From the NCBI GenBank assembly GCA_013416795.1, contig RQSC01000032.1, forward strand, positions 398,823-462,822: 64,000 bases of DNA, written 5' to 3'. A program made the position numbers and the translations under genes. Under the pieces are notes generated by a model. It saw nothing but the letters and a program-made list of their open reading frames with translations, searched no databases and had not been told where the DNA came from. This document shows, piece by piece, positions 35,481 through 46,160 of this stretch; the stretch's first letter is position 1, and the number at the start of each line of letters is the position of its first letter. The DNA is from Prasinococcaceae sp. CCMP 1430. Its lineage: Eukaryota; Plantae; Prasinodermophyta.

Positions 35481-35937
35481 CTGCGGGCGGCGCGGGGGCG
35501 CACACGTGAGGGCACGCGCAGGGGCGCCGCGTTTTCGCAGTCGCCGCTCGGAGCGTCAGCGCTTGAGTGTGCGCACACACCAAGGAAGGCGCCGCGCGAG
35601 CTGCCCCGCAGGGGACGGAGAGCCCCAGCCCAGCCCGCTCGACGTGCCCATCGCCCTTCGTATCAGACGGCCCCAGCCCGCCGCCCAAGCCCCCCCGGCG
35701 CCGCCGCCAGCGGCGGCGCCCGCCCAGAGTCCCAACCACTTCTTATACAAAATGTTGTACACATACACCCACGTGTGGAGGCGCCTGGCGGAACGCCAGC
35801 GGCAGCGTGACGGGGCGGCGGCCACACACGAGCGAGAGCGCGAGCGCGACGTGCGGGGCTGACTTTAATCATACGTACTTTAATATTGTGTGTGACTGAG
35901 TGTTTCTGGGAGTGTACAGTATGTACGCGCGCGCCCC

Positions 35938-36651
35938 TCACCACGAGCCGTACGCGTCGTCCTCGGCACCTTGCGTCTGGAAGTACACCATCCCGGACCC
36001 TAGGACGCACGTCGTCTGTAGCACGCCTGCGATGCCCGGCCAGGGGTCCTTGTCGGGCTTGTCCGCGTAGTCTGTGATCAGCACGCCTACGCTGACAGCG
36101 AGCGCGCTGAATGACATCACGTACACCAACAGAAGGTACAGCCGTACGCGTTTCTCTGCGCCGTCGATCGAGTACCCTCCCGCACCCGCGCTGTCGAGGT
36201 CGCCCTGCGGGCGAGATGCGAACAAGTCCGCATCAGTTGGAGGTTCTGCACGGAGAAAGAAAGCGCGCGCTCTCGCAAACGCGCGCCTGCTGCACTCACC
36301 TTGGACACCATGTTCAAGAAGAGGGCGGAGAGCGTCGCGAGAATGCCGCCAAGCCAATGCACGAAGGGCACCTTGCCGTGCATAATGACCGCGTCGCACC
36401 ACATCGACCAGCCTGCGCCGAAGAACATTCCCGCCTGCGCGCGCGCGCGTGCGCGCGTGCGCGCCAGCGTCGCGCGCCCGTACGTTCCGTGTGAGCACAG
36501 GCGCAGACCAGCAGAGCGCGTGCGCCCACGCCACTCGCGCGTGGCGCCGGCGCGCTCGGGCACGCACAATGATGGGCCCCTGCTGCTTGAGCGCGTCGCG
36601 ACCGCTCTCTCGCCACCACTGGATGCCCCACTCGACGCATGCAGCGACCAT
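35938..36651 (-). CDS. TMEM50/UPF0220 (Vps68-like) membrane protein; exons 36651-36568, 36434-36300, 36204-35938
   Basis: AGMFFGAGWSMWCDA, PFVHWLGGILATLSALFLNMVS, R..L...YV.SF.A...SV, WPGIAGVLQ; all introns phase 0 GT-AG. Confidence 0.85.
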   Translation of the reverse strand: MVAACVEWGIQWWRESGRDALKQQGPIIVRARARRRHARVAWAHALCWSAPVLTRNVRARDAGAHARTRARAGGNVLRRRLVDVVRRGHYARQGALRALAWRHSRDALRPLLEHGVQGECSRRAFARARAFFLRAEPPTDADLFASRPQGDLDSAGAGGYSIDGAEKRVRLYLLLVYVMSFSALAVSVGVLITDYADKPDKDPWPGIAGVLQTTCVLGSGMVYFQTQGAEDDAYGSW

Positions 36652-37147
36652 CGCGCGCGGCGGTGCGACCGGGCGGCCGCGCGCGGCGCGGGGCGGCGAG
36701 CGCGACAGGCAGCGTGCCACGACGGGCGCCCGCTGCCTCCCGACACGCCCGTTCCCGCGCTCGCGCCGTGCGCCAGCGCGCCGTGTGGCGCGAGCCGCGG
36801 CGCTCCATTCGGGGAACCGCCCTTTTTTTTTGGTTTGTTGCTGTAGTGACTACACACACGCACTGGCACACACGGGCACACACACACACACCGCCGCGCA
36901 GCCTGCCGAGCTCCCCGCCGCGCGTCCCGCCCCGCCGCGCGGTGGGCGGTGGGTGACACCCTCGAGGGCGTGCCACTGGCCACACCGACGGGCCTGCCCC
37001 CCGCGGCGCCCGTGCGAGTGGCGCGCGCGCTGGCACGGCGGCAAATATGCCGCGACGCGCGCGTTGTGCGGTGCGCACAGCGCGAGCGGCGCGGACGGCC
37101 GCTGTCGGCGAGTGGCCGGACGCGCCTCGGGACTCAACGCCGCAGCG

Positions 37148-39294: not shown

Positions 39295-40430
39295 CGCCCG
39301 TGGCCGCGCGCGCCTCGCCCATGCGCGCCGAACATGCCACCCGCCCAGCCCGACGCGAGCTCTCCTTCCTCACCCATCCTCCCTCTCTAACCCCCGTGAC
39401 CCCCCAGGAAGCCACCCTCCCCTCCTCCTCCGCTCGCGCCGTGCGGCCCGCTCTCGTCCTTCCCACCGTCCGCGATCGCCCCCGCCTCCTCCCTCTTCCC
39501 GCCTCGGCTCTCCCTCTCCCTCGCTCCCGAGCGCACCCCAACTCCCCGCGCGCGTAGGCGCCCGAGCGCACGCGCCGACCCGACGACCGTCGTCGTCGCC
39601 ACCGCCACGCGCGCGCGCGCGGCGCGTCGCGCGGCCGTTTTCGCGGGAGGGGAAAGCGCCTCGCGAGGGGTTCAAGCGTACCAAGAACCGCGGGACGAAA
39701 GCGCGGCGCTTTCGCGAACGCAGCCGCCAGGCCCGGCTGGCGCCCTGACGGCTGCGCGGCGGCTGGCCGTACGGGTTCCAATGGGATTCGCAAAGGTTCC
39801 AAATAGATATGGAAGGAATGAGAGTAATCGTTCATAGAGAGAAAATGGAATCCGCGTGTTTGGGCGCGTCTGAAGGGGGCGCGCGAGCGCGCGCGCGCGG
39901 CACAAGGCGCGCGCGCGGCGGGCGGACCCCCCCCCCCCACGTGCGGAGATGTACCCGCCGTCGGGCTCCCGCGCCACGCCGCCACCGTCGCTTTCGCGCG
40001 CGCCGCCACGCCCGCGGCTGGCCTTGCGAGGGCGGCTACCGCCGCCATGCCTCGCTCCTCGGAGGGAAGGAGTGCTGGGCCGACGAGGCGCGCGCACCGC
40101 CTGCTGTGCCACCTCCCTCACAACGACCTCGACGCCAGAGCCCAAGCTTGCGACAAACCCGACTCCCAAAACCCTCGCAAAATAACCTCAAAGATGGTTT
40201 CCTGCTGGTAGCGTTCACAATGATAATGATTTTCGTGCGAGCAAAAGATGAATTGATTTTGATCAGTGAACCGAAACCTTGGTGCCGTGCGGCGTTGCCA
40301 GCTTTCGGCGGCCGCCGGAGCCGCCGGCTGGCGGCTGCCCCATGCGGCCGGGGGGGCGCGGCGGGGGTGGCGCGCCACACCGCGCTGCTGGCGGCTCTCC
40401 ACGAAACGCCCGGCCCGCCGGGCTCGCCCG

Positions 40431-41399
40431 ATGGTGTGGTTTCAGTGCGAGACGTGCGGCGACACGCTCAAGAAGGTGCGCGGCGGCTATGCCTGCGCAA
40501 TCGCGGACCGCTGAGCACGCGCGGCAGCGCGGCGGCACCGCGCCTGTTGCTGACGTCGCCGGCATGCACGGCCGGATGGCTATTGCGGAACTCCCCTCCG
40601 TGCTCCCTCTCTGTGCATGTGTCTGCCCCCCCACCTGCCCATCCGACGGCATTTCGGCGATGCGCCGCTGCAGCCGAAACTGCCACAGCACTATAGCCGC
40701 TGCCCGTGCGTTGCGGTGAGCTGCGTCGACTGCGGGCAGACCTTCGACCGACGCAGCGCCCAATTTCACACGAGCTGCATCACCGAGGCGGACAAGTACG
40801 GAGGCAACTTCGCGTACGCTGGTGGTGGCGCTGCTGCAGGTGGCGGTGGCAATGGAGGTGCTAACGCCAACGGTGCGGGCGACACCATCGGCCTGTCGAC
40901 GTGCGCACCATGGATGTGCTCGCTCTGCCGCGTGACTTGCACGAGCCAGGAGACGCTGCACGGTCACGCCCAGGGGAAGAAACACAAGTCTAAGGCCCGC
41001 CAAGCGCGCGCGAAGCTCGCAGAGGAGGCGAAGGTGGCCGAAGGCGGCGCCGCTGCGCCAGCCTCCGCGGCGCCTTCCGCCATCGCGCAACCGAAACCCG
41101 CCGACACCGTCGCAGCCGCCGCCGACGGCGGCGATGACGATCGCAAGAGCGAAGACACGGGCCACGACGCGTCTGCCGCCAAGGCCGCGCGCAAAGCTGA
41201 AAAAGCGGCGGAGCGGGCGGCGCGAAAGGACAAGAAGGCCGCACGCGCCGAAAGGAAGGAGCTGAAGGCCGCAGGTGGCAAGGTCGACAAGCGCGCCAAG
41301 AAGGCCAAGAAAGAGAAGAAGGAGAAAAAAGAGAAAAAGTCCAAGAAGGAGAAGAAGGAGAAGAAGGGGAAAAAGGAGAAGAAGGACAGGGAAAAGTAG
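40431..41399 (+). CDS. LYAR: LYAR-type C2HC zinc-finger nucleolar protein; exons 40431-40475 and 40674-41399
   Basis: MVWFQCETCGDTLKK|PKL..H...C....SCVDCG..F.....HTSCITEADKY, U1-type finger WMCSLC.V..TSQETL.GH..GKKH, KKE-rich tail. Confidence 0.9.
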
Positions 41400-41528: not shown

Positions 41529-43727
41529 TCATGCCCGGTCTTCTGCGGGCCTCGGCGGCGCAGGCGCACTTGGGAGCTGGGAGCCGACAGGGAGCCTCGA
41601 CACGGGCATCCCCATCGAGCTACCATGGCTGTACTGCGATGCACCTGCACCCGGGCCGAGCACGGGAGGCATACTTTGGTTCGCAGCGATGCCGTGCACA
41701 GCGAACCCGCTAGGCACCGGCCCGGGCGCGCCATACGAGGGCACGAAACCATCGTTTGCGTGGTAGTAAGGCGCCGTTTGTGCACCACTGTCTGCCGGCC
41801 CGCTGCGCGCTTCCGTGCGGCCCATGCCCGCAGCACCTCCAGTATAGCCAGATGCCGGCGCCTGCAATCCTGTGCCAGCGGCCTCGAAAGCAGACCCCAC
41901 GCCGGTGCAGGCCTGCGTCGTGGGCAGCGCGATGTTGAGCGACGCCAGCCGAGGCCCTGATCCGAAGAGCGAGCCGGCGTTGACCGAGCCGCCCTGCATG
42001 AGCGCCGACGCGTACTCATTGAAGCCGACCCGCCTCTGCGCGAGCCGCGCCATGGCCGCCTCCTTGTTGCGCCGGACACGCTCACGCTGCTCGGGGCTGA
42101 GCGGCCGCTCCCATCCTCGCTGCTCCTCAGGAGGCCGTGTCTGCGCATGCGGCCGCCCCGGCTGAGGCCCCGGCTGCTGGCACAGCGGAGGCTGAGACAC
42201 GGGCAGCTGCGACTGATGTTGCCGTAAGAGCATAGCTTTGGCCTTGCGCCTGAGAGCCTCTTGCCGGTTTCGCTCAATGCGTTCCCTCTGCTCGTCGGTC
42301 AGCTGCGACCCGCTCTCCATGTCCTCGCGTCCTCGCTTATCGCCGACGCTGGCTGCAGCAGTGCTGTTGCCGGTGCCGGTGGCCTGCTGGCCAGACGGCT
42401 GCGGGCCCGACAGCGTGCGCGCCGCAGCGTCATCCCCCTCGTCGCTGCTGAGCTCGACGACCTCCACCGCGCCGGCTGCCCCCTGCAGCTGAGCGCCAGC
42501 GTTTGCACACCCCGGCGCCTGCACGAGCTGCGGGCGCGAGCCGCCGAGCGCCACGAGCAGGTTGGCGGCGTCACTTGACAGCTGGTCAGACCCCCCGGTC
42601 AGCTGCACCACGCCCGTCGCCATCTTCTGCATCTCTGCCGAGCGCAGGTCGGCGCCCACTGCGCCCGACCGCGCGAAGTCTGCTGCGGAGGCGGCGAACG
42701 GGTGGCCGCCGCGAGCCCCCATCGCCGAGCGCTGCCGCTGTGCATCCGCGAGCGCGGCGCCGATAGCCGCGTTGGCAGCCACCGCGGCCACGTGCGGGCC
42801 AGGGAGAGTTGCAGGCGCGCGCGCGGGCACGGGGCGCACCATAGCGACCACGTCTGCTCCGGGCGTAGGCGTGCCGAAGGCGGTGTCGCTTTGCGCCAGC
42901 GACGCCGTGCATAGTTGACGCCGCATAGTCAACCCCGCGCTCGGCTGCGCCGGGGCGCCTGGGTGCAGCTTTGGTAGCTTGATGCTCAGATTGGCGCCGA
43001 TGCGTCGCTTGCCGAATCGCACGCGGTCGGTGGGCACCGCAGGCAGTGCCGAGAGCGCACGCGCCTCAACGCGCGGTGACGGCGGCTTGGCCTGCTGCTC
43101 CTTCCCTTGCTCCTTTCCTTGCTCCTGCTCCTCCTGCTTCTCCTGCTGGTGCCCTTGCTCTTGCTGTTCTCGCTGCTGCCCTTGCTGCCCCTCTTGTTGC
43201 TTTCCACCGTCGTCCTCATCGTCGCTGTCAGACAACAGAATGACCTCCTCCTGTTTGCCACCGCCTCCGCCACCTCTCCCGCCTCCGCCACCACCCTCAT
43301 CGTCCGAATCGTCGAGCTGCGGTGTCCACTTGAGGTCTCTGCTGATGGTGACGGTCTCGCACTCCTCTGGCGCTGCTGCGAGTAGCCGCAGCACGACCTC
43401 GTCAACGCGCAGCGTTTTGACAGGGGCGTTGCAGATGGGGCACACGGGCGTGACCTCGGCAGCGGTGCCGCCCTTGCGCAAGCGCAGCGAGACCTTCTGC
43501 TCGAGCACCGAGAAAAAGGTGTTGCGGTCAAAGCAGTCGACGTGCTTGCAGCGGTCGCCGCGGCACGGCACGCTGAGCCGCACGCCGCCCGCAGGGCACA
43601 TGAGCTTCAGCGGCACCGACTCGACGACGACACCGTCGCGGTCGAGGTCGGCCGCGCGCGCGCCGCCGTGCAACCGCCGGCGCAGCGCGGCGAGCGCGTT
43701 GCGGAACGCCACCAGCTCGGTGCCCAC
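41529..43727 (-). CDS. SP-RING (MIZ) zinc-finger protein, SIZ/PIAS-like SUMO E3 candidate; start unresolved
   Basis: LMCPAGGVRLSVPCRGDRCKHVDCFD...VCPICN...LRVD; SIM-like VILLSDSDDED and VVELSSDEGDD. Confidence 0.8.
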   Translation of the reverse strand: MGTELVAFRNALAALRRRLHGGARAADLDRDGVVVESVPLKLMCPAGGVRLSVPCRGDRCKHVDCFDRNTFFSVLEQKVSLRLRKGGTAAEVTPVCPICNAPVKTLRVDEVVLRLLAAAPEECETVTISRDLKWTPQLDDSDDEGGGGGGRGGGGGGKQEEVILLSDSDDEDDGGKQQEGQQGQQREQQEQGHQQEKQEEQEQGKEQGKEQQAKPPSPRVEARALSALPAVPTDRVRFGKRRIGANLSIKLPKLHPGAPAQPSAGLTMRRQLCTASLAQSDTAFGTPTPGADVVAMVRPVPARAPATLPGPHVAAVAANAAIGAALADAQRQRSAMGARGGHPFAASAADFARSGAVGADLRSAEMQKMATGVVQLTGGSDQLSSDAANLLVALGGSRPQLVQAPGCANAGAQLQGAAGAVEVVELSSDEGDDAAARTLSGPQPSGQQATGTGNSTAAASVGDKRGREDMESGSQLTDEQRERIERNRQEALRRKAKAMLLRQHQSQLPVSQPPLCQQPGPQPGRPHAQTRPPEEQRGWERPLSPEQRERVRRNKEAAMARLAQRRVGFNEYASALMQGGSVNAGSLFGSGPRLASLNIALPTTQACTGVGSAFEAAGTGLQAPASGYTGGAAGMGRTEARSGPADSGAQTAPYYHANDGFVPSYGAPGPVPSGFAVHGIAANQSMPPVLGPGAGASQYSHGSSMGMPVSRLPVGSQLPSAPAPPRPAEDRA

Positions 43728-44048
43728 CTCAGCAGCGAGCGGCGTCCCCCCTCCCGGCCGTCCCTGCCCGGGGCGCGCGTGTGGCGCACCTGCGCGGCGG
43801 CCAGCCGCCGCCGCAAGATCACGCTCCTGCCAGAGCGGGCGCCAAACCCGAACCGAACCCGGGTACTCCCGCGACGACCACGGAATATGTGCGCACGAGG
43901 AGTCGAATAATGAACCGGATTTACCCGGTCAGTCCACAGGCGCATTCTGGGTCAGGGCGAGCACATCCGCACGCTGCCACAGCGCGTGCCGGGTCGGGGT
44001 CGGGGTGGGGTGTGAGAGAGAGGGGGAGGGGGGGGGGGGGGGGGGGGG

Positions 44049-45130
44049 ATGGCGTCGGCGGCGGCGGCGCGCGTGCTGGGCGCGTCCGAGCGCGAGGCGT
44101 CGCTGCGCGCGTACGGCGCGCGGCTGGCGCTCGAGGCGTGCCTGCTGCTGCGGCTGCCGCACGCGGCGGCGGTGACGGCGTGCGTGCTCTTCCAGGCGCT
44201 GGTCGACCGGCGGCCGGCGCCTGCTGATAGGCCGCTGGTGCCAGCTGCCGACGAGCGCGTCGCTGCATGCGTGTGGCTCGCTGCCAAGCTCGAGGAGGCG
44301 CCGCGTCCCGCGCGCTCCGTCGTTTCCGTTTTTGAGCGGCTGCGGCAGCGCCGGGCCTCCGCATGCAAGCCCGTCCCGCTCGACTACTCAACAGTCGAGT
44401 ACGATCGCCTGCGCGCCGCGCTTGTGAGGACCGAGCGCATGCTGCTCGACGAGTTCGGCTTCATGGTGGTGCGTGGCGTACGCGCGCGCGTGCGCGTGCG
44501 AGCGCGCGTGCGAGCGCGCGTGCGAGCGTCCCGCCCGGTCCCGTCCCTTTTTCGCTGACGCGGTAGGTGCGACCGCGCGTGCTTCTTGGCCGTGCAGGAA
44601 GTGGAACATCCCCACAAGCTCGTGCTGTCGATCGCACAGCTGCTGGGCTTCCGCGCGGGCGCGGACTCGGGACTCATGCAGTGTGCCTGGTCGCTGGCCA
44701 ACGATGCGCTGCGCACGCGGCTGTGCGTCGCCGCGCCTGCCACTGTCGTCGCTGTCGCTGCCATCGCGCTCGCTGCGCGCACGGTGGGCGTCTCGCTCCC
44801 AAGCGAGGCGCAGGGGGCACCGTGGTGGGAGGCGTTCCAGTGTAGCCGCGACCAGATGCTTGGCGCTATGCGTACAATCCAGGCCGTGTACGACAGCCCG
44901 CCCGTAGCGTATGACCTGGTCGAGGAGCAGCTGAGAAGACAAGAAGAGGCGGCCAACGCGCGGGAGCACGCGCAGCATCGGCATCACGAGCAGCAGCAGC
45001 AGCAGCAGGCGGCGGAGGAGGCACGCGCGCGTGCGCAGGCGATCGCGCGCCGAGCATCCGCGCCGACAGCTCCCGCGAGCCGGCCTGCGCCCGCCGGCAC
45101 AGGCGCGGCAGCCAAGGCGGCGGCGGCAGC
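44049..45130 (+). CDS. Cyclin L-like; exons 44049-44468 and 44598 to the gap
   Basis: E..LRAYGA.L...AC.LLRLP.AA.VTACVLF, WLAAKLEEAPR, ERMLL.EFGF.V|EVEHPHK, AWSLAND.LRT.LCV, PWWEAF. Confidence 0.85.
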
Positions 45131-46160
45131 NNNNNNNNNNNNNNNNNNNNNNNNNNNNNNNNNNNNNNNNNNNNNNNNNNNNNNNNNNNNNNNNNNNNNN
45201 NNNNNNNNNNNNNNNNNNNNNNNNNNNNNNNNNNNNNNNNNNNNNNNNNNNNNNNNNNNNNNNNNNNNNNNNNNNNNNNNNNNNNNNNNNNNNNNNNNNN
45301 NNNNNNNNNNNNNNNNNNNNNNNNNNNNNNNNNNNNNNNNNNNNNNNNNNNNNNNNNNNNNNNNNNNNNNNNNNNNNNNNNNNNNNNNNNNNNNNNNNNN
45401 NNNNNNNNNNNNNNNNNNNNNNNNNNNNNNNNNNNNNNNNNNNNNNNNNNNNNNNNNNNNNNNNNNNNNNNNNNNNNNNNNNNNNNNNNNNNNNNNNNNN
45501 NNNNNNNNNNNNNNNNNNNNNNNNNNNNNNNNNNNNNNNNNNNNNNNNNNNNNNNNNNNNNNNNNNNNNNNNNNNNNNNNNNNNNNNNNNNNNNNNNNNN
45601 NNNNNNNNNNNNNNNNNNNNNNNNNNNNNNNNNNNNNNNNNNNNNNNNNNNNNNNNNNNNNNNNNNNNNNNNNNNNNNNNNNNNNNNNNNNNNNNNNNNN
45701 NNNNNNNNNNNNNNNNNNNNNNNNNNNNNNNNNNNNNNNNNNNNNNNNNNNNNNNNNNNNNNNNNNNNNNNNNNNNNNNNNNNNNNNNNNNNNNNNNNNN
45801 NNNNNNNNNNNNNNNNNNNNNNNNNNNNNNNNNNNNNNNNNNNNNNNNNNNNNNNNNNNNNNNNNNNNNNNNNNNNNNNNNNNNNNNNNNNNNNNNNNNN
45901 NNNNNNNNNNNNNNNNNNNNNNNNNNNNNNNNNNNNNNNNNNNNNNNNNNNNNNNNNNNNNNNNNNNNNNNNNNNNNNNNNNNNNNNNNNNNNNNNNNNN
46001 NNNNNNNNNNNNNNNNNNNNNNNNNNNNNNNNNNNNNNNNNNNNNNNNNNNNNNNNNNNNNNNGAGCCCAGCTGCCCGCCCGCGCACGCGCCGTCGCCGC
46101 GGCGCGCCTGCGGCTCGCCCGCTCCGCGCGGAAACGCGCCCCACGGGGCGTGCGCTCGCG

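Follow-up and report, generated by a model that had tools for sequence, protein, structure and literature searches.

A Siz/PIAS-type SP-RING protein with an RPA32C-binding-type helix and no SAP, PINIT or PHD domain in a prasinodermophyte alga

The stretch of 64,000 nucleotides analysed here (the window) encodes on its minus strand an SP-RING protein, referred to below as the P. coloniale protein, that joins a Siz/PIAS-like RING to two SIMs and, far downstream, to a helix of the RPA32C-binding type. This domain layout is real, selectively conserved and apparently undescribed, and it probably reaches a known function, that of a SUMO ligase recruited by RPA2, by means of a different and new docking part. 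The reading that we favour is a lineage-restricted, Siz/PIAS-derived SP-RING protein that acts as a SUMO E3 recruited by RPA and whose activity is probably weak or specialised, and we give it very nearly an even chance. An earlier inspection made from the letters alone (the sequence-only reading) had placed an SP-RING, two SIM-plus-acid tracts and two helices in this region. All of them were recovered, in one stop-free minus-strand frame (41529-43727) that carries the RING, SIM1, SIM2, helix 1 and helix 2 in a window with a GC content of about 68-70%, which agrees with the 69.8% published for P. coloniale. The features of the gene are the following:

43744-43790, minus strand: site at which 145 G-rich bases are missing from the window, comprising the larger part of a candidate 5'UTR intron of 154 bp (putative GT..AG borders) and the start ATG
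41529-43727, minus strand: coding frame of the SP-RING gene, a single exon, about 743 aa with the missing start restored; full-length P. coloniale-type copies are P0003/P0005 and the gene on L006 (Tara contigs)
43665-43727, minus strand: N-terminal helix ahead of the SP-RING (helix 3-23 in the model), also found in the orthologue, where a predicted intron splits it
43320-43649, minus strand: SP-RING and SP-CTD, zinc ligands C60, H62, C96 and C99 intact, with Ala46, Pro94 and a 13-residue insertion
43212-43250, minus strand: SIM1 with acidic tract, directly after the SP-CTD as in Siz/PIAS ligases (PMC8064691), 83% identical in the orthologue
42957-43058, minus strand: conserved basic block of 34 aa that contains KRR, 76% identical in the orthologue
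42429-42467, minus strand: SIM2 with acidic tract, of which the orthologue keeps the pattern (DVITLSDTDEED) at an identity of only 27%
42327-42338, minus strand: KRGR, NLS-like by pattern only, with KRSR nearby in the orthologue
42240-42302, minus strand: RPA32C-binding-type helix 1, conserved
42030-42101, minus strand: RPA32C-binding-type helix 2, a weaker match, restricted to P. coloniale and found in every full-length copy of the P. coloniale type that was compared
41532-42000, minus strand: low-complexity tail rich in Gly, Pro and Ala, with poor conservation

The window copy has no in-frame ATG upstream of the RING. On three independent Tara contigs of 96-99% identity (L002, L004 and L006) the same anchors are spaced 191 bp apart, compared with 46 bp in the window, and the extra 145 bases, located at about 43744-43750, are 57-58% G and include a gccATGg start; the restored protein has about 743 aa (P0003). 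The 145-bp loss is more likely due to an assembly collapse than to a strain allele. GTG 43727 was rejected as a start since the true ATG lies within the 145 bp that the window lacks. ATG 43601 was rejected as well, and so was an 811-aa call (P0001) that runs through the candidate intron from a TTG start. The missing start codon before the RING and a scaffold that is locally mis-ordered could be taken to mean that RING and helices come from different genes, or that the frame is mis-assembled or the gene dead. However, intact collinear frames are present in several independent Tara contigs and the second lineage keeps the frame with synonymous change throughout; an artefact of this kind is thus highly improbable.

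Head-to-head with the SP-RING gene lies a gene for a cyclin (L/T-like; 44049-45130, plus strand), which clusters with a Prasinoderma coloniale protein (EukProt). On the other side a LYAR-type zinc-finger gene with a Lys/Glu-rich tail (40554-41399, plus strand) is convergent and ends 130 bp from the stop of the SP-RING gene. After the cyclin gene the window consists of a 933-base N gap (45131-46063). A 933-bp stretch that the window holds at 35781-36714 sits right after the cyclin gene in the Tara contigs L004 and L006, and L006 joins 39357 to 39979 and runs on to 49626. The scaffold is probably mis-ordered locally, or strains differ.

The distance from the restored ATG to the ATG of the divergent cyclin gene is about 430 bp, and neither the protein nor any upstream frame of the restored region has a Pfam match to SAP, PINIT or PHD. 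We therefore regard these three domains as truly absent, which agrees with the sequence-only reading, in which none had been visible. Only about 50 residues precede the RING, so that there is no room for PINIT, and the orthologue begins equally short. An additional upstream coding exon with SAP or PINIT was rejected for lack of room, for lack of a Pfam match and because the orthologue starts alike.

This orthologue, P0002, is 44% identical, has 9 cluster members from marine metagenomes and lies between different neighbouring genes. On its contigs an ATG lies 270 bp upstream of the start that was called, and after separate translation of the 5' exons a short exon and the exon that follows match the N-terminus of the P. 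coloniale protein; both lineages thus begin just before the SP-RING helix. In this region (L003 2487-2757) the database start is too late, and the N-terminal helix of the orthologue is interrupted by a predicted 168-bp phase-1 intron that has no counterpart in P. coloniale.

The RING proper (43598-43428, minus strand) is recognised by the Pfam model zf-MIZ (E 2.9e-9, 37 bits at a curated cut-off of 33.5), and its zinc ligands form the C, H, C, C set that is invariant in the SP-RING alignment. A PDB sequence search returned Siz2, PIAS3, Siz1 and PIAS2 for the RING. The RING was modelled with a pLDDT of 89, and the ten best Foldseek folds, in which the SP-CTD is included, all belong to Siz1, Siz2, PIAS2 or PIAS3 (Siz1 5JNE, E 1.5e-8). 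The zf-Nse model reached 14 bits against a cut-off of 27 (E 0.05), and NSE2/MMS21 appeared at Foldseek rank 17 (E 0.02). A quick RING tree, with no identified plant sequences among the matches, was unresolved and placed the SP-RING protein with no group.

The residues that face the E2 are degenerate. The structure 5JNE carries the exchange C361D. Using this exchange, the PDB alignments and the published work on GEI-17 (PMC4268692), we equate Ala46 of the P. coloniale protein, two residues after the first Cys, with Siz1-I363. Among 97 other aligned SP-RINGs this site is occupied by Leu (74), Ile (13), Val (5) or Tyr (5) and never by Ala, which a looser pattern count found once in 118. The orthologue has Val at the site and Ala for the nearly invariant Pro that precedes it; the E2 loop C-P-[LI] reads CPA in P. 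coloniale and CAV in the orthologue. An L-to-A change at the equivalent position strongly lowers the activity of worm GEI-17 (PMC4268692). Moreover, the Trp of the WxCPxC motif, present in 115 of 127 scored matches, is replaced by Pro in both lineages, in the P. coloniale protein by Pro94; the W372A variant of PIAS1, in which this Trp is exchanged, is inactive (PMC9009768), and a few other natural SP-RINGs also do without it. An insertion of 13-15 residues ahead of the Trp site lengthens the spacer to 28 and 30 residues, compared with 15 in 100 of about 127 matches, and is predicted by the model simply to extend a helix. The degenerate E2-facing residues suggest, but are no proof, that the ligase is weak, dead or re-specialised. 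Another degenerate E2-face set was seen in metagenomes, where P0023, P0073, P0114 and P0040 form a small supported SP-RING clade with D-R-Y for C-P-L and no Trp. A further metagenome protein (P0018, 1519 aa) has four tandem repeats that contain an SP-RING.

Such an E2 face could belong to a scaffold or pseudo-ligase, somewhat ZMIZ-like, that would be docked on RPA2 by helix 1, would collect sumoylated repair proteins with its SIMs and would use the SP-RING as a binding domain. The E2-loop substitutions that differ between the lineages (CPA vs CAV), the missing Trp and the insertion of 13-15 residues are in line with this, and in ZMIZ1 the evidence that its SP-RING acts as a ligase is weak (PMC13687641). 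However, the RING is 66% identical between the lineages and has lost neither the SP-CTD nor any zinc ligand, SIM1 is placed where active ligases have their SIM, the Trp is also missing from a few other natural SP-RINGs, and the insertion is predicted merely to lengthen a helix. We consider a scaffold without ligase function rather unlikely.

The conserved basic block between the SIMs is about as conserved as the RING. It has no confident structure in the model and no match in other SP-RING proteins, and is possibly an NLS or a partner-binding site.

Helix 1 lies in a region of predicted disorder and is conserved above its flanks, with 72% identity between the lineages as against 15-28% in the linkers, and 10 of its 18 unchanged residues are encoded by changed codons. 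In the model, helices 1 and 2 are the best-predicted parts of the disordered tail. When helix 1 alone was searched against the PDB, SMARCAL1 (4MQV, E 1.2e-4) and TIPIN 194-217 (E 0.0057) were found, and the SMARCAL1 peptide of 4MQV was also returned unprompted for this helix by the PDB search that matched the RING. The alignment to both peptides is gapless, with the L-T-x-E-Q cap and the R-I-E-x-N-R-Q core in register. Helix 1 of the orthologue matched SMARCAL1 and TIPIN with E 0.005 and 0.006. 4MQV is the complex of RPA32C with SMARCAL1, and the RPA32C surface occupied there is also that of TIPIN, UNG2 and XPA (PMC11387677, PMC11109976). In 20000 shuffled versions of the protein neither a strict nor a relaxed motif pattern turned up once, and elsewhere in the window the strict pattern is absent from all six frames; since the pattern was drawn after the sequence had been seen, the PDB search makes for a fairer test.

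Helix 2 matched SMARCAL1 with an E value of only 0.21, close to that of unrelated helices, and falls in a stretch of 35 residues that is missing from the orthologue. Its origin by recent duplication of DNA was rejected, as 42 of 82 bases are alike; it is therefore old or convergent. The sequence-only reading had assigned both helices to the RPA32C-binding motif and had proposed bivalent docking. The assignment holds for helix 1, which the orthologue retains, and is weaker for helix 2, which it lacks; with one helix in the sole orthologue, bivalent docking has to be given up as a conserved design. We consider it likely that the SP-RING protein docks on RPA.

The motif is short and rich in E, R and Q, and helix 2 does not outscore chance helices. 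The helix might accordingly bind another winged-helix or acidic partner, and the protein might be a nuclear SUMO-pathway protein of the PIAL or ZMIZ kind, unrelated to RPA and active in SUMO-chain building or transcription. PIAL1/2 combine an SP-RING with SIMs and build chains (PMC11371177, PMC8064691), and the cyclin and LYAR-type neighbours, which are not shared with the orthologue and its different neighbours, give no repair context. However, in both lineages helix 1 finds its two best PDB matches in the two known RPA32C-binding helices, with cap and core in register, and the PINIT domain of PIALs is missing here. We hold a function apart from RPA to be distinctly unlikely.

A profile built from the two proteins was searched against 1.84 billion representatives and returned P0002, one fragment of the gene from P. 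coloniale and, after these, SP-RING proteins of the generic kind. None of the 147 other matches listed joins an SP-RING to an RPA32C-type helix, and this search should have placed any such protein near the top; the layout thus appears confined to these two lineages, though spliced genes of eukaryotes are often broken up in the searched collections. One unrelated fragment of 216 aa among these matches carries the helix without a RING. This disordered metagenome protein (P0148, L008 49-699) ends in the helix motif, has a SIM-like hydrophobic-acidic tract upstream of it and gave no domain match. No further relatives were obtained by word searches with the helix region or with the first 230 residues of the orthologue, by scans of JGI metagenomes with peptide patterns from P0003/P0002 or by Atlas searches.

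For the RPA-recruited E3 that we favour, the following mode of action can be proposed. On ssDNA coated with RPA, helix 1 would fold against the C-terminal winged helix that RPA2 carries, as the helices of SMARCAL1, TIPIN and UNG2 do, and would keep the SP-RING tethered where forks have stalled or breaks have been resected, replacing the SAP/eSAP contact of yeast Siz2. The SP-RING with its SP-CTD would hold the E2~SUMO, SIM1 would hold SUMO on the backside of the E2, as in Siz1 (PMC8064691, PMC8636563), and SIM2 could bind proteins that are already modified. Without PINIT, substrates would presumably be chosen by proximity along the flexible linker of about 330 residues. In P. coloniale only, helix 2 may add avidity.

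This reading is favoured by the fold match, by the PDB matches and the conservation of helix 1, by the short N-terminus common to both lineages and by the precedent of SUMO ligases recruited through RPA2. It is also favoured by the Val of the orthologue at the I363 site, the residue of 5 of the 97 other SP-RINGs. It is weakened by the Ala at this site, by the missing Pro of the orthologue, by the absence of the WxCPxC Trp and by the restriction to two lineages. The helix alone may not suffice, since Siz2 without SAP gave no detectable sumoylation of RPA in vitro, and the contribution of the Rfa2 winged helix was only 5-fold (PMC8591536). That the protein is either an active E3 which has independently re-invented recruitment by RPA, with a SMARCAL1/TIPIN-type helix (two of them in P. 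coloniale) for the whole SAP/PHD/PINIT front end, in a minimal, DNA-independent form that would sumoylate any protein present on RPA-coated ssDNA, or else an undescribed ligase-dead adaptor between RPA and SUMO, is a possibility that we put slightly below even.

If the favoured reading is true, SUMO ligases have made convergent use of one RPA surface, in this case in the deepest lineage of green plants. In yeast it is debated to what extent Siz2 acts at breaks via RPA2 binding and to what extent via SAP-DNA binding (PMC4536307 vs PMC8591536), and a natural ligase that has the RPA2-docking part alone would be a direct test of whether tethering to RPA suffices for damage-induced group sumoylation. 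The reach of the finding is limited by its two lineages and by an enzyme that may be weak or dead. P. coloniale is among the phytoplankton with the lowest measured mutation rates (PMC11884799), which is a fact on the alga that is not tied to the SP-RING gene.

Judged by its predicted domain content, the P. coloniale protein fits neither SIZ1/PIAS, PIAL nor NSE2. The impression of an unrecognised architecture has been borne out, as the layout was not found elsewhere in the profile-search matches listed or in the papers searched; the searched literature on SUMO ligases and RPA32, with most subscription journals outside its coverage, contained no SP-RING protein with an RPA32C motif. Plant and algal SIZ1 share the SP-RING and a downstream SIM with acidic tract, but have SAP and PHD (also in Chlamydomonas, PMC7522501) as well as PINIT (PMC8064691), and no RPA32C helix has been described for them. 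Chlamydomonas has a SIZ1 of the SAP-PHD-SP-RING type and MMS21 but no PIAL (PMC7522501). Arabidopsis PIAL1/2 resemble our protein in the lack of SAP and PHD and in the order of SP-RING, SIMs and a long tail; however, they have PINIT (PMC8064691), are reported to be absent from unicellular algae (PMC11371177) and have no described RPA32C helix. ZMIZ1/2 and Tonalli likewise have an SP-RING without SAP, long disordered Ala/Pro-rich regions and uncertain ligase activity (PMC13687641), but they function in transcription, have TPR as well as transactivation domains and are without a described RPA motif. NSE2/MMS21 is also a small SP-RING ligase with SIMs, which a protein partner links to DNA repair, whereas the P. 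coloniale protein is nearer to Siz/PIAS in fold and sequence (Foldseek E 1e-8 vs 0.02) and lacks the Smc5-binding helical domain. An RPA32C-type helix in a disordered region is also found in SMARCAL1, TIPIN, UNG2, XPA, CSB and NEIL1, but those proteins are translocases, glycosylases or fork factors.

The closest precedent is yeast Siz2, which comes to breaks because its SAP/eSAP region binds the middle subunit of RPA directly; human PIAS1/4 bind the RPA middle subunit, too (PMC4536307). Siz2 contacts the winged helix of Rfa2, an interaction that has been compared to those of UNG2 and SMARCAL1, although binding of DNA by SAP mattered more in vitro (PMC8591536). Since SUMO ligases recruited by RPA2 are known, the function is not new, and the earlier proposal of a new system does not stand: such recruitment has been published for Siz2 and reported for PIAS1/4 (PMC4536307, PMC8591536). 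With these enzymes the P. coloniale protein shares the fold made up of SP-RING and SP-CTD, the SIM after the SP-CTD and, putatively, the recruitment by RPA2. In contrast to Siz2, which has SAP/eSAP, binding of duplex DNA and PINIT, it has none of these and instead carries a SMARCAL1/TIPIN-type helix about 380 residues after the RING.
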